Numbered from the stretch's first letter, positions 8,862 to 56,924 are shown. The stretch: DNA of 64,000 nt from Macrostomum hystrix (GCA_950097015.1 CATNEN010000008.1:4402001-4466000); one strand, 5' to 3'. Notes: generated by a model from the sequence alone, not told the origin. A program made the numbers and translations.

Positions 8862-9272
8862 ATCTAGTAACTCGGCAAAAACATTCCCTGTTATCTAGTA
8901 ACTCGGCCAAAACATTCCCTGTTATCTAGTAACTCGGCCAGAACATTCCCTGTTATCTAGTAACTCGGCCAGAACATTCCCTGTTATCTAGAAACTCGGC
9001 CAGAACATTCCCTGTCATGTAGTAACTCGGCCAGAACATTCCCTGTCATCTAGTAACTAGGCCAAAACATTCCCTGTTATCTAGTAACTCGGCCAGAACA
9101 TTCCCTGTCATCTAGTAACTCGGCCAGAACATTCCCTGTCATCTAGTAACTCGGCCAAACCATTCCCTGTTATCTAGTAACTCGGCCAGAACATTCCCTG
9201 TTATCTAGTAACTCTCGGCCAGAACATTCCCTGTTACTAGTAACTCGGCCAGAACATTCCCTGTTCTCTATG
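8862..9272. repeat. 31-bp minisatellite (ACATTCCCTGTTATCTAGTAACTCGGCCAGA), about 13 copies
   Basis: A period of 31 nt was measured from 8881 to 8912 and continues to about 9270. Confidence 0.96.
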
Positions 9273-10554: not shown

Positions 10555-13500
10555 ATGCACTCACGTGGCATAATTCTGCGAGGCCAGTCTGAGAGCTTGA
10601 CTGACCGAATCCGTGGCCTCCTAGCTGAGTACTCCGATGGCCTGGCGGTGCCCAAGGAGCTGCTTCAGAACGCTGACGATGCTGGTGCCACAGAGGTGAC
10701 ATTGGTGCTGGACACGCGTAGCCACCAGGACCGACGCAGCACCCTGCTGGACCCGCGGCTGGCCGAATGGCAGGTGAGAATATTAGCTGGGTTTGTGGCG
10801 GCTTGAGTTGAAGAAGGCAGCCTAACTATCAGTGGGCAATGGTCAACAATCTCCGTTTTCCACGCTGGTGTCCATGCAGGGTGCCTGCCTGTGGGCCTAC
10901 AATGATGCCGAGTTCACACAGCGTGACTTCGAGAATCTCTGCCGTCTAGGAGGTGCCACCAAGCGAGAGCGGCTGGACGACGGCCAAGTTGGAAAATTCG
11001 GACTCGGATTCAATGCCGTGTACAATCTCACTGACGTTCCGTCAATTCTTAGCGGCCACTGGCTGCAGGTGAGCGTTTGCTGGGCTTATAGCTGTTAGTC
11101 GTCGGGGCGTTCTATTTTTTAAGCGAAACATCAGACTCTTCCTAGCTCGAGTTCATTGAACGTTTCCTGTGTAGAATTTACGCCACAAAAATATATAATA
11201 ATAATTAATTGCAGGAGGGATGCAGGAAATGGCACACCATTTAGTGACACCCGCACCCAGCGAGGAGGCCATTCTGCCCATTCCACTGACTCCTGAGCAC
11301 ACACTCACACAGGTGTGTACATCTGCCCTGACTTTCTCACCTTGGAGGTTGGCCCTCATGTGCGTAAACTTCCCGAAAAGCCACCGAGCCTTCTCTCCGC
11401 AAAGAATCTGGCCTTGCCGCGGAATCGAGCTCAGGGACCTTGGTGCGAGAGGCAAACGCGTGAACCGCTCTGCCACCGACCCCCCCCCCTATATGTAGTA
11501 CATGTAAAAGCCCAATTCCTTCTTCATCGCAGATACTGGATCCGCACAGCGACCTAGTTGGTGGAGGTCACCTAGAGGATCTGTTTCAGCGAATGGGACA
11601 GCGACAGACCGGAGTGACGCTGGACATCTCAGCGGATGAGGAACTCGTGCTCAGGGAGTTCAGAGACCAACTGGCTCCATTTCAGGTAATTCTTAGGGCT
11701 TAAACGACTTTTGTTTCGAGACAGGATACGTTGTTCAGCTGTCTGAACAGGCTTTAGCCTGAGCAAGTCCTTTATATAAGACATGCTTTTCTTTTCTATC
11801 TTAGAAATCTCTACCGCCGATTGAGTCTTCTCACAGGTCCATTGGTTAACATAACTTGTGAGATTATGGCTAAACTGTTATGAGTTTATCGCTAAGCTAG
11901 GCTTGTGCGTATGCTATGTGCATCTCAAATTGCTGAGCAGCTATTATTTGACAGGGCGTGCTTGAGGCTAAGACAACGAAGTCACATTGCCTACCATCCA
12001 CGCAATTTCCTTCGCCAGGGCATGCTAGGCTGCGACCTGCGGCTTGGCCAGGCCTTCCGTGGCACGCTGATCCGCATGCCGCTGCGGCCGCAGTCCCTGG
12101 CCAGGAGGTCTCGGATCTGCCAGCGCGCCTACTCGGTGAGCGATGCGTGGTCGCTGCTGCGCCAGACTGCCGAGCGGGCCTCAAGCCTCATCATGTTTGC
12201 CCAGTCAGTGCGACGACTGACTCTGGCGTATAGGGGCGAGGGCGACACCGACTGCAAGGTTCGGTTTGAATGCGATTGTGGCGGTGGGAACTCGAGTTCG
12301 GGTTTCAGACTCACAGGTATTGTGTAGGTGGGAACTCGAGTTCAAGTGGTCTGTCGCACATGGCCATGCATCTCCCGCAGATTCTGCTGGTGGTCGAGCG
12401 CAGTCTGCAGCAGTGCTACTCGGGCCACGGCCTGCCGACACCGGGCGTGACTGAGCCGCTATCGGTGCAGTGCAGCCTGCTAAAAGCGTACCGGGCCCTT
12501 CTGAAAAAGCAGCAGCAGCAGCCAGTGCTGTGCAGCTTTACGATGCTTGTGAGCGTCCGTCAGCCGCTATGTTTGTCTCAGCAGGCCAATCAAGGATTTG
12601 GGATGAGCAGAATCGCGGAAGTCGGTGAGCACCGCTGGCTGGTGACTTCAGCGCTCGGTGGCTCAGAGGCGATTCGGATGGCTGCCGATCACCCCAGCCT
12701 GGCTCTGTCACCTGTTGGCTCAGTTGCTGTCCGTATGGAGGCCTCTTCAATGACACCATTGCCGCTGCCGACCTCTGAGGCGGCCGTGTTCTGCTTCCTG
12801 CCGCTGCCGGCTGGCGCAGAGACGCCGCCCTTCCCGGTGTTGCTGAATGGCGCCTTCGCGCTCACGTCCAGCCGACGCCACCTGCTGGAGTCGACAGGGG
12901 ACGACAGGCGCGGCGAGTGGAGCCCGGGCCAGTGGAACGCCTGTCTGTTGTCGAGTGTGCTGGCGCCAGCCTACCTGAAGACACTACAGCTGCTGGCAAG
13001 GTATCGAGCTCCTGCTCAGGCAGCTCTGGGTCTGTGGCCTCAGAGCCAGGTGCGTTTATGCAGTGTTGCTCGCGCTCAGCCATGTTTGTTTTATTTCGAG
13101 CTTAAATTCACGAAAAGTGCAGTCTAAGATTTTCATGATTTTATAAAAAGAAATTTACGTTATGCTGATCGCACTTCGCTAACTGCTCTTCGACCCTCAG
13201 ATAAGCCGCCTGTGGGAGCCGCTCGCCCTCCAGTTGTACAATTTAGCCTTCAGCAAAAATGGTCCGGCTCTGTTTCCCAGCTCTGAAGGCTGGCGCGGAG
13301 TCGACAACTGCAAGTTCGCCGATCCGAGCTTGAAAACTCTGACCCCGGTTGCTGAGACACTATTGAACGCCATCTCTGACGGACTCGTGTGGTTCACACC
13401 TGAGATGCACGCCGCCGCAATGAAGTTTGCAGGTGCTATGTACGAGAGCCGGTTCCTGTCCGCTGAAGACGGAGTTCTGCTTGTTCTCGACTCCGCCTCG

Positions 13501-26985: not shown

Positions 26986-28728
26986 TCATGCTGAGTCATC
27001 ATTTTCTAACTGTGTCGCACTAGTCTCCATGGCAACAGCAGAGTCAGCATCAGCAACCTTGGCAGAGCCTGCACAGAATTGGAGGCGACCGCCGCCACTT
27101 TGCACAAACTGTTCACCATCGTAGATGGTCTCTGGTAGAGACTTACCAACTGTCTCTGGTAAAAAGTAGATTACTAGACAGGCGAGCAATGGCCCAACAC
27201 CGAAAATGACAAATGGCAGCGGGCCCCAGATTGAGCGAAGTGGTAGCAGCTGCGTGCTGAGAATCGCGCCCACCCTGGCCATGGTTGAGCCGGAGCCAAC
27301 TCCGGCGCTGCGAATCACAGTTGGAAATAATTCGCTGTAGTAGAGCCACACAGAGTCAAAGGCGACTGTAATACTTAGCTTGCTTAGGACGGCCAGTGCC
27401 ACATTCGCTGCCGCTGTACCGGCTGCGGACTGTTCGAATACGCCAACCATTGCTGCTAGGAACACGGCGGACGAGGCGAAGGACGCGTAGAGTACTGGCT
27501 TGCGGCCAACGCGACAGATTGATAATAGCATGCCTAGAAAGCGAGCTGGCACTTCTACAGCAGAGACTAGGGCCAAATTCAGGAAGACATCACCACCGAT
27601 AGAATCGGCACCCAGGCTGATGCCGTAGTAGGTCATGGACGCTGCGAACCAGTGCAGCCAGCTCAGTAAGGTGGCTCTGCGCAGTCCAGGCGTGCGAAAC
27701 AGATCCATTAGGTTGCCGGCTTTGGGATCACTGCCAGTCCCCGTTTGCTTTTCATTCGTGTAGATCTCCTGGGCTGCAAAATTATCAGGCAGGTTGTCAA
27801 TAGTGCGGTTCAGTCTAGCCGCTCTGCCAATGACAGCGTCGGCTCGAGCCACCCGGCCGGTGGTAACCAACCATCGGGCCGACTCGCCAGCTAATATTAA
27901 TAGCAGGTACAGCGGTATGCTAGTTGCACACAGCCACAGTAATTGGGCTTGATAGTTTCGCTCCAAATAGGCAACTAAAGTGACGGTGAATATGCCTAGC
28001 GACCAGCCTTGATTGATGGTGAAGCCCCACACTAGGCGGTGCGCCGAGTCCGTGCACTCAATAACAGCAGAGTAAAGCACTGTGATCAAACCTCCAGTGC
28101 CAACACCGGCAAGCAGCATAGCAACAGCGTAGAGCCAGTAGAATGGAGCTAGCCCTGCCATAGCGGTGGTCAGCGTCAGATGTGCCATGCTAATCAGACT
28201 GGCAGGCATTCGGCCAAACTTGTCTCCGATCATGCCGTACAGGCTGGCTCCAACGAGGAAGCCGGCAAAGAAACCGGTTGTAGCTAAATCAGCCAGGTAG
28301 CTATGTCCGCAGACCAAGCGAAATCGGCTTGCCACAGTCTCGGTGAAGATCGACCTATCGAAGGTCCAATCGACGCAGGCCAGATTGTCTAGCGTGCCAC
28401 CCGCCAGATTGGTGCAGTTGAGCGATACTCGACACTGGTCTGGCATAGCCTCAGCTGACCAACAGCTGGCCAGAAGTTCGGAGCCCACAGTGGCGTTTAC
28501 GTCGCAGTAGTGCTTCATCAGTGACGACCTAGCGAATGCGTGTGACAGTGTGACCATTCCGGGAAAGGCTTTAGCAAGGCTTAGACAGGCTAGCAACATT
28601 AGCTGATAGCGACCACTAGCTCCCAGTAGAGCAAGCAAGGCTTCAAAAGTGCGCGGTCGGCCTTCGGACGAATCCGAATTCTTTGCTGATGAATTCGACT
28701 CATTGTCTGACTCGCTTTTCACTGACAT
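26986..28728 (-). CDS. SLC22-family (OCT/OAT-like) MFS organic ion transporter, 580 aa, single coding exon
   Basis: The ORF is uninterrupted from ATG 28728. It shows hallmark motifs TFEALLALLGASGRYQ, a Cys-containing extracellular loop ending WTFDRSIFTETVASRFRLVC, GDKFGRMP, ESARWL, DLFRTPGLR, VGRK, YYSELFPTVIRSAGVG..ARVG and LPETVGKSLPETIYD. Confidence 0.95.
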   Translation of the reverse strand: MSVKSESDNESNSSAKNSDSSEGRPRTFEALLALLGASGRYQLMLLACLSLAKAFPGMVTLSHAFARSSLMKHYCDVNATVGSELLASCWSAEAMPDQCRVSLNCTNLAGGTLDNLACVDWTFDRSIFTETVASRFRLVCGHSYLADLATTGFFAGFLVGASLYGMIGDKFGRMPASLISMAHLTLTTAMAGLAPFYWLYAVAMLLAGVGTGGLITVLYSAVIECTDSAHRLVWGFTINQGWSLGIFTVTLVAYLERNYQAQLLWLCATSIPLYLLLILAGESARWLVTTGRVARADAVIGRAARLNRTIDNLPDNFAAQEIYTNEKQTGTGSDPKAGNLMDLFRTPGLRRATLLSWLHWFAASMTYYGISLGADSIGGDVFLNLALVSAVEVPARFLGMLLSICRVGRKPVLYASFASSAVFLAAMVGVFEQSAAGTAAANVALAVLSKLSITVAFDSVWLYYSELFPTVIRSAGVGSGSTMARVGAILSTQLLPLRSIWGPLPFVIFGVGPLLACLVIYFLPETVGKSLPETIYDGEQFVQSGGGRLQFCAGSAKVADADSAVAMETSATQLENDDSA

Positions 28729-29169
28729 CGTTCGGTCTGACAGAGCCAAATCGGTTCGGAAAGTTTACTTTCACTTTTCGCTTTCAAGAGAAGTGCCTTA
28801 ATTAAATACGCTTAACTGTATTCCCCTTAGTCTGTGCCCTATCTTATCTTGCTACAGGCTTTGAAAAGCTAAAGATAGGCTTTTATTCGAACTATTTTAA
28901 ATATCAGCTTTGTACTTTTTCTGTTCAGTTCAACTTTCACATACAAGCCAAAGATTAGATTTCACAGCTCTCGCGCGATAAAAGTGTCTACAACGCTAGC
29001 TGCAACAGCAAGGCCTGTCTTTCAATTGATTAACTTTCACCGCAATTTACTTAAAGGCATGTACGAGCTGTTGGAGATAACTAGAAATTAATTTTGACTA
29101 ATTTTGAAAGTGAACAAGTAGAGGTCAAATGATTGTTCTAGTCTTCAAAGTAAAGCAAGACTATCTCGT

Positions 29170-48700: not shown

Positions 48701-51002
48701 ATTCTTAAGGCTCTGAGGCGAGCCGCTGTTTCAACCTCTGCCTGCGTCCTAGTCAGAATAAATGCATCCATTTTGCATTGAAAAAAAGCATCGCGTTTTT
48801 CTTCAGACATTGATCATGAGATAAAAAATCTTTATTTGATTTTGGTCTGATGTTTCAATATAAAAGTCCGACATTCAAAAGTGAGTCTACTGCAGCTAAA
48901 GCTACTCAAACAGCATTTTTACCAAAACAATACAAACAACTCGAGTGAGTCTAATCAAAGGACCAATTAGACTAACAACAGCTACAGCTACAGCTTCTGT
49001 GCAATTTCGAAGCACCTTTCACTTGTTACAGCTGATATTAAAGAATCGCAACGAGGATGAGCTTCGCCGCAAACAATCAGGAAATGGAAAATAATGGTCA
49101 GTATTAAATTAGAACCGACAACATTGTTCGCTTCACGAAACGAACAGCAAAGACATTTATTGCGCATCTAAATGATCAACTGACGGCAATAAAATGAACT
49201 AATCAATCATTTCTCTCCCTTCTCTCCAGTTAACCTTCCAGATTTCAACGATTGTGCTGAGATGGCCTTTGTGTTGAAGATCTGATGAAGCATCACCTGA
49301 GCTCGTATTATTCACGGTTGAGGCATCATTTTCGCGTAAGTTTTTAAACTGTAGTTTTAGTTTTAGTTTTATAGCAACCTTTACAAATACTAAGTACTCT
49401 GACTTCTGATACTGCTGCGACAAGTATTATGTGCTTATTGGCATTTTTTATTTTCGTTTTTTAATCAAAGCAATTAGGATGCTTCTTGTAGGCTAAGTTT
49501 TGCTTCCTGGATCGTGGTTAGAGCTTAAAATAACAACAACAAAGGGTAAATACAGTTAGAGAAGATCTACAGTCTGTCAATTGGTTGCAAATCGAAAGTT
49601 AGCGAGGCCATTATGTTATGGGATTCACGGTTTACGCATGATAAATTTTGCATTAAACTAACTAGTAAGTAAGGAAATCGTCTCAATGTAACCCAATGGA
49701 ACTGAGATATGCCCTGTCTCCTTCCCTCGGAATAGTGTGCTTGTGAATAACTCAATTGGCTATTCAAATGCGCAGAATGGTTGAGTCATGTTGATATCGA
49801 TCTTTGTGGGAGGTCTTTGTGGGACTCCTCTCTGTTCGAGCGGCCATTTGCTCTTGTGAGTAGGCCCTCGAACCCCTGCACATGTCACACAGACATATCA
49901 AACAACCCAAACCACTCTTTCCTCATTGCAGCCTTACCCAGTCCTGCGCGCCAGGTGAAACAGATTGGGAAGCAAACAGAAAACTAACTATAAACACAGA
50001 CTAGCTCGATAGTCACTGGCTGTGAGGGGATAGAAGCAATGAAAACTGGCAGTGGCAGCCTGTACATTATTGACTTTTGGGGGTTTCGTTCTCCACCCAC
50101 CTCTCCTGCTCCCAGGGGATATAATTGCACAACCTCTATAGTTGTCCGACCACCTTTTTAGGACCCCCTTCGTTCGGACCGAAGCATAGTCTAGGCCTAG
50201 ACAGTGTCGAATCTTTGCAGTCTTATCTATTTTGCAGTAAATCCCAAAAGAATAGATTAAATTGCCTCGCTAAAATACATAGCTATTATAACTTATAACA
50301 CGAGCCGATTTAAGCAGATTTAATCTTTTTACCTAGCTATTAAATCAGTGGGCGGCTTCTAGAATCCCTAACATCATTTGTAATCCTAATTCCTAAGCCC
50401 TAACTCCTAACTAAACCAAAACTTTTATCGTTTCAGTCTGCATCAAATTGGAAGCAGCCGAGAACCAATCTGGAGTTGGACATGACCTACCTGGCATATC
50501 TGGATTAGAACTATTTGCTGCGACCAGCCATATAGTTATAGTTATAGATATAGTTATTTTATTTTATCGCTTAAGCCGCTACTGCCGAGACCTTTTCATT
50601 TCATGCAGAAAATTGATTCTAATGCGATTTTGTCTAAACTTTCAAGACTTTTGTCTGTCATCATGAGATATTTTTCCCAAGTTGATTAGTGTTTCGGTTG
50701 AAGTTCAGAAAATTTTATTTGTACTTAAAAATATTTTCTACTACGACAGAACGCCATGTTTTTCTAAATGTTGAATTTTACCTAACTTTCTTTGAAGCCT
50801 TGTTTTCTATGCATAGAGCTGAATTGGATTACCCCTTCTATTATAGTTATTCAGGGTTTCTGATTCGTATTGAATAATAGCTATCTAGATAAACAACTAT
50901 TTGACCCATCAGCGACCATCTCCTAGCCTAGGGCTATTTAATTACAATTATTTTAGACCAAATGTCGCCTACAATTATTGTCCGCGCATTAACTTATTCC
51001 AG

Positions 51003-54000
51003 GCTTTAAGGCATAAAAAATCAACAGCAACCAGGGAGACGGCTCCCTCTACAGCTTCAGCGAAGCGGCCCCTGGACATCATCAGTGAGCGGATTCTGGA
51101 TTCTGACGTGCTGCGCCAGATGCCTAAAGTGCCACGGGTGGTACACAGTTCTAAAGGTGAGGAGTGACGACTCTCTGATGCAGACCAGCCAAATCATTTA
51201 ATAGCCAATTTAATCATTTTAATGCATATCGTTCCACTGCTTGCGCCTTTGTTGCAGATCCGCTGCGACCTGTAAAACCCAACTCAGATGAGTATCATAA
51301 CGATATCGGCTGCATCATAGCGCGCAGCTTCCTAGAGAAGGAACTGATTAGCCAGTTCAATGTTGTCACCGCCTACAGAATTGTTAACTGGCACTTGCAG
51401 GAAAAGGTAGGGATTGATTAGTTCCTCCTAGTCATAGACAGCTTGACACCTGATATCCCGCTTATTTCACTTTTTCTTCTACTGGCTTCAGTAGCATCAT
51501 CGAGTTTTGATGCAAAAATATAAACCTTAACTTACGCGATTCTTCATTTGCGCAGTTCAAAGCCAAGAAGGCAGAGATTCAGGCGGCTATAGCGGAAGAA
51601 AGCACCGACGATCCAAAGGTCATCGTCAAGCAGGAGGTGCGGCACGGATTTCTCTACCTGGCGCCTGGAAAGAACGCTTTTAAACAGGTACAACAGTTGG
51701 CCGAATCCGGTGTACAACGCGGCAACCTGCCCGACTCTACTCTGGCTGTCGGCACTGACGGCGTCTCCCTCAGCCGGCACGCCGATCGGAGCTCGCCTAG
51801 CAGCGGCCTGGCCGAGAGTGGCTGGCTAGTTGTCTGTCGCTACATTCCCGGCCGCACCCATCGCTGGACGGAGGGCGGCAGCGTGGTTGAGCCGCAGCCT
51901 AATTATGATAGCCACGAAAGCATGCGCTACTCGTGCCCTTTAGAAACAGGCGAGATTAGAAGGGTCAGCTTAACCGCCAGCTTTCACAGCAGCCAAGTAT
52001 TCCTATTTGAATATGGACCAGATCAGGAGCTAGTGGACTGTCCCAGGCATGTGCTGCCTGTGGCCGCGGTACAATTTGAGTTCACCGGAACGGTTAGTCT
52101 TGCGGGCACTCCGCAGTAGTTGTACACGGGTGTGGGTTTCTAATTGAATAGACATCAGATTGGTAGCTAAACAAAAAAAAGTAGTTTTAACGAGTAGGCA
52201 ATTTGTTAACTTAATTGGTAGTTTAGCAGTTAATAGTCGTTTGCAGGTTGCTAGACTCAAAAAAATCGCATATCATTTAGTTACCACAGCCGTCGTCAAC
52301 TATTGATGATGCCTGACCTCCTTCATCCTTGGTTAATAAAATGATTCCTAGAAAACGAATCGACTTGTTCCTAGGACCTCGGTGTTAATGCTGTCTGTTT
52401 TCTGGGCCCGAACTGTTTTTTGCCTTGTTCCCAAGCAAATTGGCTTAGCATCCTGCTGTCCTGTAATCTGGAGCTCGAAGCGATAGCAGAAAGTGACAGG
52501 CGGAGCTGAAATAAGTTGCCAAATCAAATAAATTTTTCTGTTGCAAAAAACGAAGCTAGAGAATTTTGCGACATTGCTGCTTTCTGTTATTTTTTGCTTG
52601 GAACTGCCGACTGAGTTACTAATGACTTTACTAATTACTAATGAGTTACTAATACCAATCCCCCACCTGTCAATTCCACCTGTCAATTTTAGATCCGGGA
52701 TCGCTGCCTGAAGCGGAAGGCTGGCCAGCCGCAGCAGCAACGCCAGACAAAGCACTCAGCGCCGCCGCCAACGATGCCTCAGCCGACGAAATCGCAACCG
52801 ACGCAGCCCGCTCAGCAGCAGCCACAGATGCCGCCGCCTACACTGAATGCATCAGACAAGGAGAACAACTCGATGGACCCGCCGATGACCTCGTCCTCCT
52901 CATCCTCATCGTCTCCCGAAGAAGCCAGGCAGCAGAAGCGCCGGCAGAGGCAGCCGCATCCTGACCGGCATCAGCTAGTGAAGCCTTTCAGCGGTAGCAA
53001 TCTGATTGGCGAAGTGCACCTGCCAGTCCTAGACGGCTGGTTCCTCAAGCTGGGCCTGGCCTCGCTGGAGCCTAGGCCGTGCGTCTTCCCATTCTTGCAG
53101 CTGGGGTCGAAGCCGGCCGCGTTCGCCTGCCGGATTGTTTGCGCCGCCGAGCTCGAGGCCTGCTTAGCCAATTGCGGCTCCCTGTCCATGGTTGACGAGA
53201 CCCCAGTATGCCGTCTGGCCAGTTCAACAGCCGGCTACGTCAGCTATCTGGCCGGCATGCTCCATCCGTGGTGCGCCAATCGGGCCCGGACCCTATTTCA
53301 GATGCTGGCAGCTCAGGGCCGCCTACTGGTGGCGCCGATAATGGAGCCCACCGACGGATGCGCCGCTCTGTGCTATCTAGTACCGACGGCGTCTACGCTG
53401 GCTACTAAGTTGCGCCTAAATGAGACCGCATGCCGGACTCTTGGCACGGGCACTATTCCCAACCTGGTGCATGTGCTCATCTGGCTGCCGAAGCCGCGCA
53501 GGCAGTTGTTGAGTAGCGTCGATACCGGCGCCCAATGGGAGCCCGTGTGTCAGAGCGCTCGCTATTACAATTATGAGGACTGCTTCAGCGGCCTGGCTGA
53601 TCGATTGCGCCTTGCTGCCGGGCAGCGACGGCGAGTGGCGGATGCGGTCGCAACACCGGCAGCGCCGGTACCGACCGCAGCTCTAGACCATCGAGATCCC
53701 AGGTTTCGTCCTGCGAATTCAAGGTTGTATGCAAATTTTGCAGCCTCGGCTTCACTCTCGACGTCATCTGGCGCTGGAGTGCCCGATTCACGTGCACCTG
53801 TTGCTTGCGCCTCTACACCTGTGCCAGTGTCTATAGCGACTACGGCTCCCGCTGTCACACCTGTGCCAGTGTCAATAGCGACTATGGCTCCCGCTGTTAC
53901 ACCTGTGCCAGTGGCTAAGGCGTCACCTGCCTCCACCGTCACACCTGTGCCAGTGTCAATAGTGACTACGGCTCCCGCTGTCACACCTGTGCCAGTGTCA

Positions 54001-56145
54001 ATAGCGACTATGGCTCCCGCTGTCACACCTGTGCCAGTGTCTAAGGCGTCACCTGCCTCCACCGTCACACCTGTGCCAGTGTCAATAGTGACTACGGCTC
54101 CCGCTGTCACACCTGTGCCAGTGTCAATAGCGACTATGGCTCCCGCTGTCACACCTGTGCCAGTGTCTAAGGCGTCACCTGCCTCCACCGTCACACCTGT
54201 GCCAGTGTCAATAGTGACTACGGCTCCCGCTGTCACACCTGTGCCAGTGTCAATAGCGACTATGGCTCCCGCTGTCACACCTGTGCCAGTGTCAATAGCG
54301 ACTATGGCTCCCGCTGTCACACCTGTGCCAGTGTCAATAGCGACTATGGCTCCCGCTGTCACACCTGTGCCAGTGTCTAAGGCGTCACCTGCCTCCACCG
54401 TCACTCCTGTGCCAGGGTCCAAGGCGTCACCTGCCTCCACCGTCACACCTTTGACAGGGTCTAAGGCATCACCTGCGTCCATCGTCGCACCTGTGCCAGG
54501 GTCTAAAGCGTCACCTGCCTCCACCGTCACACCTGTGCAAGGGCCTAAGGTTCTGACTGCCACAGCACCTGTGAACTCCGAGAAACTCTGCGCACCTACT
54601 GCCTCCGCTGCTTCGTCTGTAAATGGACCTAGGTTTTACAGCACACCTGCAGCCACCACTGCCAAAACTGTTCCAGTGCCAGACGCATGCAGCATATACA
54701 CACCAGCGGCTGCTACACTCCCTGCCACACCTGCCACATCAACAGCCACACCTGCGACACTCACTGCCACACCTGCTACATCAGCAGCCACACCTGCTAC
54801 ATCAACAGCCACACCTGCGACACTTACTACCACACCTGCTCCGTCAACAGACTCACCTGCTACATCAACAGCCACACCTGCGACACTTACTACCACACCT
54901 GCTCCATCAACAGACTCACCTGCTATACTCACTGCCTTTACTGATACATCAGCAGTCACACCTGCTACATCAGCAGCCACACCTGCTACATCAGCAGCCA
55001 CACCTGCTACATCAGCAGCCACACCTGCTACATCAGCAGCCACACCTGTTTACTGCACAGCAACACTTGCTGCATCTAAGGCCGCAACATATCTGTCTGA
55101 TGCCACACCTGTTGTGTCTTCCGTCGCGCCTGCTGAATCTTCTGCCTCTACAGCAATGCCTGCTACTTCTGCTTTCTCGGCCGCACCCCTGGCAGCTTCG
55201 GTTAAATTTATCGCCACATCTGGCCCAATGCCTACTGTGGTAGCCACAGGTGTGCCAGCACCCGACCAACCCGTTGGCGCTGGCATCTCAAGCCGCGGCG
55301 CTTGCAACAATCGGTACAGTCTTAGTGTCACGCGTGCTTACAATGCACATATCCTAAATCATTTAAATAGTTGGCAGATTAATTACCTATTTTATTTCAA
55401 TTGCAGGAGGTGCAGCAGGGACAGCGGCCGTACCAGCGGCAGCCGCAGCAGCAGCCAGTCAACTCATAAGAAATTTAAGCGCGAAGGTAGCCGCAGTCAC
55501 GGAAGCGGCGGCAGAATCAGTGACCGTCATCTTAATAGTGACAGCAGCCGCTATCACAGCAGCAACAGCCGCCGCCGACGACACCACACGAGCAGTAGTC
55601 ACAGAAGCGACAGAGACCGGCGGCGCAATATAAGCAGTAGGCGCAGCCGCAGCAGAAGTCGGACCAGCGACGAACGGCCTCACCGGGAGAGGCATCGACA
55701 GACCGAATCGTCGACGTCGCCTAGACCGCAGGATAATGAATACGACTTCGATTTCAGTGACGATCACCGAGACCGGAAAAGCAGCTTTATTTATCCGGCC
55801 CAGCCGCGGTCAGAGTCTAAGCGGAAATTTAGCATGATTGAGGCGCTGGAACAATTAAATGCAGAAGAAAGAGCTCAAGCAGATGAGATGCTTAACAAAC
55901 TTAATGCCTTCCTCATGAGCAAGCGTCGCCGCTTAAATGAAAGCCACTTGGCGTCGCCCAGTTCATCAGCCTCATCTAAGGCTGTCACAGTTGCTGCAGC
56001 CTCCGACAACAACGTCGCTGCTACCACCGACAATGCCGCTGCCACCGCCGCCTCCGCCGACAATGCTACCACCGCGACAGGCGGCACGGCCTACTCGGCA
56101 TTCTACCGACAAGATATCCTGGCCTTCTTAACTGATTCATTTTGA
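51003..56145 (+). CDS. TASOR: TASOR/FAM208A-like protein: DUF3715 pseudo-PARP, SPOC-like domain, Pro/Thr repeats, Arg/Ser-rich tail. Exons 51003-51156, 51258-51406, 51556-52092, 52693-55313, 55407-56145; 5' end uncertain
   Basis: The exons join with consistent phases (1, 0, 0, 2) and total 4200 nt. The spliced product has PLRPVKPNSDEY..IARSFLE..FNVVTAYRIVNWHLQEKFKAKKAEI, GFLYL, LAESGV, GVSLSRHAD, VEPQPNYDSHES and SQVFLFEYGPDQELVDCPRHVLPVAAVQF. These align with remembered human TASOR motifs (GSREFEDVVNILHSSYLE, AFLMV, ICEKGL, GVYLSRYAD, LDPTPKHECHVS, TQYYFYEYGFDELRRRPRHVCPYAVVSF). A candidate first exon, MKHHLSSYYSRLRHHFR|GTAAGT at 49285-49335, is phase-compatible but unproven. Confidence 0.85.
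53810..55050 (+). repeat. Coding tandem repeats in the TASOR-like gene: 42-bp units (VTPVPVSIATMAPA / VTPVPVSKASPAST) and 21-bp units (TPATSAA)
   Basis: In-frame repeats within the long exon, which stays open across them. Confidence 0.9.
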
Positions 56146-56209
56146 TGCCGCAGATCCAGACTTGCAGTGTAGATAATGCTCGAAATTAAATTGTCAATCA
56201 GAAATTCTT

Positions 56210-56215
56210 AATAAA
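56210..56215 (+). other. Probable polyadenylation signal of the TASOR-like gene
   Basis: AATAAA 65 nt after the TGA, followed by T-rich sequence. Confidence 0.5.
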
Positions 56216-56924
56216 ACATGAAGCTTTGTTTTGTCTTCCAAGCGCATTGTCCAGCTCTTGTCTATATATATGCCGTATTATTTCTTTCTTTTAGTCAGGG
56301 AAATCTACCCTTGCATGTATCGAGTTTCTTGTTTGTTAGTTTCTTGTTAAATTCTTAATTATTCTCACACGCCTCGTTTTTTGCTTCGGGTCTTTCTATC
56401 TCCGAATCTGCATTGCAACAAATTTGTCATAGTGAAGGTAAATGAAAACTGGTGCACTTTTTTTTATCAGTACTGCATCGTTTCGTTTGTTCTAGTAAAT
56501 CAGGTTGATATCTGTTTTGCTTAATCATGCTGGGAGAATATATTCAAAGTTAATTAATGCCAGATTGCTCAATTTAAGCTCTTATAATTGCGCAGGTAAT
56601 GCTAGAATTTATTGCTACTGCAGTTAAAAAAACAACATTCACTAACTTAGCCTTATTTCGTATCCCTATATGTAACCGTTATAATCAAACCTCTGTTCTC
56701 TTTAGCTATATAGAAATTACCATAATTTCGATTAATACTTAAAGCATTCTACATTTATAAAACCTTGCGTAAGCGCAGTACGAAATACATGTACCTTTGC
56801 CTTGCTCTTTGTCTTTAAATATTGCTTAAAATTGAGATAATTTTTGTACAATTGTATATGGCTTTTCAATTATGCTGCGTTTTTTTAAATCTACAACCAG
56901 ATCAATTCCATAGCACAAATGCTC

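Follow-up and report, generated by a model that had tools for sequence, protein, structure and literature searches.

Gene structure and transcript evidence

The 64,000-nucleotide (nt) stretch of Macrostomum hystrix DNA analysed here (GCA_950097015.1, CATNEN010000008.1:4402001-4466000; hereafter the window, with positions counted from its first letter) contains a five-exon gene on the plus strand at 51003-56145, encoding a protein with a TASOR-type pseudo-PARP (DUF3715) domain. The exon limits were read directly from the window sequence (Table 1). All four introns begin with GT and end with AG, and a single reading frame stays open across the five exons.

Table 1. Positions of the exons, of intron 4 and of the principal protein-coding features of the gene in the window.
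Feature	Position	Strand	Description
Exon A	51003-51156	+	N-terminal, about 51 codons; its final base is the first of a split codon
Exon B	51258-51406	+	49 codons; completes the split codon of exon A; presumed N-terminal strands of the pseudo-PARP domain
Exon C	51556-52092	+	179 codons; both ends on codon boundaries; core of the DUF3715/pseudo-PARP (RDTS) domain
Exon D	52693-55313	+	Linker rich in Q/P/S, followed by the second globular domain and by long tandem repeats rich in A/T/S/P/V
Second globular domain	52957-53625	+	About 220 residues; predicted mixed alpha/beta; probable beta-barrel plus C-terminal helix
Tandem repeat	53815-54538	+	Coding; 42-nt period, 14-residue P/V/T/A units; about 17 copies (Tandem Repeats Finder)
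Tandem repeat	54710-55076	+	Coding; 21-nt period, 7-residue A/T/P/S units (Tandem Repeats Finder)
Intron 4	55314-55406	+	93 nt, in frame, GTACAG..TTGCAG, inside the long open reading frame
Exon E	55407-56145	+	Arg/Ser-rich tract at about 55408-55820; conserved C-terminal helical segment at about 55822-56142; stop codon 56143-56145

Transcript evidence was taken from contigs of four public runs (X1, X3, X4 and X5) placed on 50500-56450; X3, X4 and X5 belong to one 2020 study, with the kind of run unrecorded, and X1 comes from a second study. Contigs of X3, X4 and X5 skip 51157-51257 and 51407-51555 exactly, contigs of X3 and X4 likewise skip 52093-52692, joining 52092 to 52693, and a 2,038-letter X4 contig runs from 51003 to 53867 through all three of these upstream joints. 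The joint of 55313 to 55407 is present in contigs of X3, X4 and X5; an X1 contig stops at 55314 and its 13 loose end letters correspond to 55408-55420, so that this joint is seen in two studies. Because the contigs skip the introns exactly, they represent spliced transcripts and the junctions are correct to the base. Downstream of 55407 the contigs continue unspliced to past 56450, from which it follows that the stop codon at 56143-56145 is real and that the 3' untranslated region exceeds 300 nt. Within the tandem repeats, 53868-54508 is spanned by no contig, as is expected of short-word assemblies. The locus holds a genuine flatworm gene that is expressed and correctly spliced.

The original prediction, made from the sequence alone, had proposed a four-exon gene with exons at 51258-51406, at 51556-52092 and from 52693 onward. 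These limits proved exact, with AG and GT at their bounds, one frame throughout and transcript joints at the junctions, but the in-frame intron 4 had been missed, so the gene has five coding exons. A long open reading frame (ORF) of 1,123 codons at 52774-56145 reads through this intron; since the intron is spliced out, 31 residues of the ORF translation are absent from the protein.

The 5' end of the transcript

The genomic match of the X3, X4 and X5 contigs begins at the acceptor AG directly before 51003, which agrees with the start proposed in the original prediction, and exactly 22 extra letters stand 5' of it. Between the upstream stop codon and 51003 there is no in-frame ATG. The sole ATG of exon A lies at 51120, in frame, and an ATG set directly before 51003 would also be in frame with this exon. 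Unitigs built from 31-letter words are expected to break about 22 letters into a leader shared between transcripts. The acceptor is conserved at the M. lignano locus (contig NIVC01004496.1, about 8990-9010), which reads TTCCAG and then GC.TT.AGGCA, and both species share ALRH as first codons. Trans-splicing adds a 35-nt leader, with ATG as its last three letters, to 10-30% of Macrostomum genes (PMC8629364, PMC10468722). From the 22 extra letters, the in-frame leader ATG and the conserved acceptor, we infer that 51003 is probably the trans-splice acceptor for the Macrostomum spliced leader. The protein would comprise about 1,400 residues if translated from the leader ATG and about 1,360 if translated from the internal ATG at 51120.

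The M. lignano gene model starts instead at an upstream ATG, probably within the outron. Two further transcript contigs, 1,002 and 1,688 letters long, have their ends at 50667 and 50755, some 250-340 nt before the 51003 acceptor; they may mark the 3' terminus of a preceding gene, which would make the arrangement operon-like.

The pseudo-PARP domain and its relatives

Each exon was searched separately against Pfam at E values up to 1, and the match of exon C to DUF3715 (PF12509) was the only one obtained over all exons (E 6.6e-12; 46.1 bits against a cut-off of 28.5; profile positions 24-150 of 150). Exon B alone gave no Pfam match, and profile positions 1-23 were unmatched. In a sequence search of the PDB, exon C matched the crystal structure of the human TASOR pseudo-PARP domain, 6TL1, at E 3.5e-6; the crystallised construct comprises residues 110-332 without 261-269 (PMC7532188). 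The predicted presence of a TASOR-type pseudo-PARP domain in an invertebrate is thereby borne out.

The closest relatives are found in M. lignano. A search with the exon D region returned three M. lignano proteins at 58-60% identity, and UniProt names two of them (A0A1I8H9D3 and A0A1I8H023) 'DUF3715 domain-containing protein'. All exons are collinear with the M. lignano protein P0001: exon A corresponds to its residues 78-118, exon B is 50% identical to residues 121-168, and residues 1-320 of exon D are 50% identical to residues 353-682. The intron that follows the DUF3715 domain lies at the same place in M. lignano contig NIVC01004496.1.

An exhaustive HMMER search with exon C retrieved 45 DUF3715 relatives among 1.84 billion representative sequences. 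Those with names are called 'protein TASOR-like' by NCBI and 'TASOR pseudo-PARP domain-containing' by UniProt, and they come from molluscs, annelids, a nemertean, a brachiopod, a nematode, arthropods, deuterostomes (fish TASOR among them) and three flatworms, Opisthorchis, Spirometra and Echinococcus. When the DUF3715 domains were placed in a maximum-likelihood tree, the gene and its M. lignano counterpart were paired with support of 100/99, and this pair is sister to the copies from the three parasitic flatworms (90/90), with the remainder of the tree roughly following the species tree. The Macrostomum branch is long (1.84), and the grouping of the flatworms could result from long-branch attraction.

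The motif FEYGPD aligns with YEYGFD of TASOR, and its Tyr corresponds to Y305 of the beta8-beta9 loop (chain index 187), mutation of which abolishes silencing (PMC7532188). The position of Y217, the only catalytic-site residue still present in TASOR (PMC7532188), is occupied by Ser in exon C. A tetrapeptide in exon C, RHGF, superficially resembles the His-Gly motif of PARP enzymes and reads RYGF in the M. lignano orthologue. Of the His-Tyr-Glu triad, the His and Tyr positions are both degenerate: Y217 is Ser, and the sole candidate His is Tyr in M. lignano. Because Y217 is replaced by Ser and the His of RHGF is unconserved in M. lignano, the domain is, as judged from its sequence, a pseudo-enzyme with a degenerate PARP active site.

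A side observation concerns profile sensitivity in the orthologue: in an hmmscan of the whole 786-residue P0001, DUF3715 was missing from the matches with E up to 0.1, yet the domain of this protein matches 6TL1 at E 2e-9. Our guess is that the HMMER bias filter suppressed the match in this Q-rich protein.

The second globular domain

A mixed alpha/beta block had been placed at about 52960-53560, and a globular domain with conserved residues is found about there, at the position where TASOR carries its SPOC domain (Table 1). It is conserved with M. lignano and is preceded by an 85-residue low-complexity linker. The proposal that this block is a SPOC domain fared less well than its placement, since it gave no Pfam match and its identity as SPOC is weakly supported.

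Position and predicted structure favour a SPOC-like domain. Hidden Markov models (HMMs) derived from the relatives' SPOC-like domains recover such a domain downstream of DUF3715 in 30 of 33 long relatives, directly after it in most. In the copies from parasitic flatworms a recognisable SPOC-like domain is retained, further downstream (hhalign 94.5%). A MAFFT alignment placed the Macrostomum domain collinear with the SPOC-like set, the invariant Glu included, and hhalign against this set gave a weak signal in the correct register (score 19.3, P 0.034). AlphaFold run on a mixed (hybrid) alignment produced a model with a mean predicted local distance difference test score (pLDDT) of 71.7, with 80-95 in the core. 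When this model was submitted to Foldseek, the best six structural matches were all SPOC domains, the top two being the SPOC domain of SHARP (probability 0.91-0.92, E 0.1). The secondary-structure elements of this model agree one for one with those of a model computed from Macrostomum sequences only.

Several results weigh against this assignment. At E up to 1 the domain matches neither Pfam SPOC (PF07744) nor DUF3699; the relatives from Mytilus, Argopecten, Mizuhopecten and Dimorphilus do match PF07744. The HMMs that recover the SPOC-like domain in the relatives find nothing in this protein, and the parasitic-flatworm copies provided no bridging match. One of 40 column shuffles reached the hhalign score, and true but divergent members reach 96-99% in that test. 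SPOC-like domains made up 24 of the 26 rows of the hybrid alignment, biasing the model to that fold, and AlphaFold on the four Macrostomum sequences gave a pLDDT of 36, an unusable model in which the fold search finds no SPOC domain. Other searches were equally empty: the first 336 residues of exon D returned nothing real from a PDB sequence search, the second domain yielded no usable match in an ESM Atlas feature search and, when 5.8 billion proteins were searched with it alone, no relatives, an HMM made from the Macrostomum domain found nothing among all 46 relatives, and a search with the Dimorphilus SPOC region returned Dimorphilus itself only. On balance, the alignment and model comparisons suggest that the second domain is probably a SPOC-like barrel that has diverged strongly and is homologous to the domain directly after DUF3715 in most of the relatives.

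Repeats, Arg/Ser-rich tract and C-terminus

Only about 45 conserved residues follow the barrel before the repeats start, and the middle part of the protein, about 650 residues, consists of A/T/S/P/V-rich tandem repeats. The first 140 residues of exon E contain 26% Ser and 23% Arg, and the C-terminal 100 or so residues match M. lignano orthologues only (E 3e-7).

The M. lignano orthologue occurs in two forms: P0001 skips about 1.1 kb (contig 11648-12745), and P0002 reads into this segment and ends in P/V/S-rich repeats. The repeat region thus seems to be alternatively spliced in M. lignano, and it is exonic in M. hystrix as far as the contigs reach.

The original prediction had inferred a TASOR-centred silencing pathway in this animal; the present results leave a HUSH pathway unsupported. 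No DomI, PIN or Periphilin-binding region was found. The conserved stretch after the barrel is too short for the 110-residue DomI; an HMM of DomI built from four fish TASORs matched vertebrates only, neither this protein nor any invertebrate relative, in a test of little power. For the DomII/PIN pair there is no Pfam match in exons D and E and no room, and similarity to any other TASOR-like C-terminus was not found. The TEX15 domain, which follows DUF3715 in TEX15, likewise had no Pfam match.

Comparison with related proteins

The M. lignano DUF3715 proteins (A0A1I8H9D3, A0A1I8H023; BOX15_Mlig000723g14) are collinear in every exon at 50-60% identity and share the pseudo-PARP domain, the second globular domain and the C-terminal helix; the M. 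hystrix protein differs from them in having about 650 additional residues of tandem repeats and an Arg/Ser (RS)-rich tract. The invertebrate TASOR-like proteins, such as those of Argopecten, Mytilus, Dimorphilus and Opisthorchis, have a DUF3715 domain 31-36% identical to that of M. hystrix (E 1e-10 or weaker), likewise directly followed by a globular domain. In those proteins, unlike in M. hystrix, Pfam or an HMM identifies the second domain as SPOC; most of these proteins are also much longer (1,200-7,700 residues), and no common C-terminal region was found.

Human TASOR, the scaffold of HUSH (6TL1; Douse et al. 2020, PMC7532188), has in common with the M. hystrix protein a pseudo-PARP domain with a degenerate active site, in which the Y305 Tyr is kept, and a probable SPOC-like domain next to it. 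The two differ in that the MPP8-binding DomI, a region like the Periphilin-binding residues 1000-1085 and the DomII/PIN pair were not found in the M. hystrix protein, which has Ser in place of Y217 and an RS-rich tail of its own. TEX15, which acts in piRNA-directed silencing in vertebrates, shares the DUF3715/RDTS domain; the TEX15 domain was not found in the M. hystrix protein, and TEX15 itself is without SPOC.

Neighbouring features of the window

On the same strand as the gene, a 2,481-codon ORF at 13234-20679 matches Pfam Sacsin (E 9e-71) and, C-terminally, HEPN (E 6e-9), representing a sacsin-like neighbour. A 587-codon ORF on the minus strand at 26989-28749 has a Pfam Sugar_tr/MFS match (E 1e-27) and belongs to a transporter gene. 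Between 34131 and 42660 lies an 8.5-kb satellite of 24/48-nt units, with about 177 copies of the 48-mer and strong AT and GC skew, which yields long spurious ORFs on the minus strand.

Discussion

TASOR-like proteins with the order DUF3715-SPOC-DomI occur throughout Metazoa (Schopp et al. 2023, PMC10578480), and HUSH is said to begin in cartilaginous fish (PMC7619638). Against this background, it is likely that the gene is a flatworm orthologue of the known metazoan TASOR-like family, with a diverged SPOC domain and, by analogy, a nuclear silencing role. The find adds one more ordinary member to that family and is what surveys already published and current database annotation would lead one to expect. 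A full-text literature search found no paper combining 'TASOR' and 'flatworm'. The novelty originally suggested is overstated: metazoan TASOR-like proteins were already published (PMC10578480) and the M. lignano orthologues already carried the DUF3715 label.

The strongest competitor to this placement holds that the gene encodes a DUF3715 protein with a lineage-specific, non-SPOC second domain, having only the pseudo-PARP domain in common with TASOR, not TASOR-like by the published definition and perhaps with a splicing-linked nuclear RNA role. It draws on the failure of SPOC profiles to match the second domain, on the lack of relatives outside M. lignano found for that domain among the 5.8 billion proteins, on the empty fold search with the model that contained no SPOC rows, and on a Ser- and Arg-rich tail in a protein in which DomI and PIN were not found. 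Set against these points are the position that the domain shares with SPOC in 30 of 33 relatives, the collinear MAFFT alignment with its invariant Glu, the weak but correctly registered hhalign signal, the succession of secondary-structure elements, which fits SPOC in both models, and the retention of SPOC in the sister flatworm copies. We regard this explanation as unlikely, if still the most credible of the alternatives. Less probable still is a protein that takes its place downstream of nuclear PIWI, like TEX15 in the germ cells of the mouse, and does not act in a HUSH-like manner. The DUF3715 domains of TEX15 and TASOR are functionally interchangeable in silencing assays (PMC10578480), no HUSH-specific interaction region was found, and such a role would suit free-living flatworms, whose stem cells and germ line are rich in PIWI; yet the TEX15 domain was not found either, TEX15 is reported to be vertebrate-specific (PMC10578480), and the proposal concerns the partners of the protein, not its family.

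An active ADP-ribosyltransferase, for which the PARP-like appearance of RHGF could be cited, was rejected as very improbable: the M. lignano orthologue, 60% identical, has Tyr in place of the His, Y217 is Ser, the best relatives are all pseudo-PARPs, and there is no Pfam PARP match. The reading as a pseudogene, an assembly artefact or an ORF pattern arising by chance has nothing in its favour except the incomplete contig coverage of the tandem repeats; given exact spliced contigs in two studies, a frame open over five exons and full-length conservation in the orthologue, it was rejected, and its probability is close to nil.

If the gene is the TASOR-like orthologue favoured here, the protein would act in the nucleus on nascent transcripts, helping to repress transposons, by analogy with TASOR and TEX15. 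The pseudo-PARP domain would be the effector module, and the SPOC domain together with the disordered RS tail would be a platform for partners or RNA. It must be held against this proposal that the silencing role is purely an analogy. A bolder version, to which we give a low probability, is a stripped-down, single-polypeptide form of RNA-directed silencing in Macrostomum flatworms: the pseudo-PARP domain and a diverged SPOC domain would be joined to the protein's own disordered RS/repeat tail, which would do the RNA-binding and self-association job of Periphilin, without MPP8. If true, this would point to an ancestral TASOR-like function before the assembly of HUSH in vertebrates.

RNA interference and transgenesis are available in Macrostomum, a laboratory flatworm, and the compact, verified gene model presented here, with its Y305-type Tyr, a probable SPOC domain and no recognisable docking parts for MPP8 or Periphilin, is a usable starting point; it could serve to ask whether transposon silencing by the pseudo-PARP domain predates HUSH.
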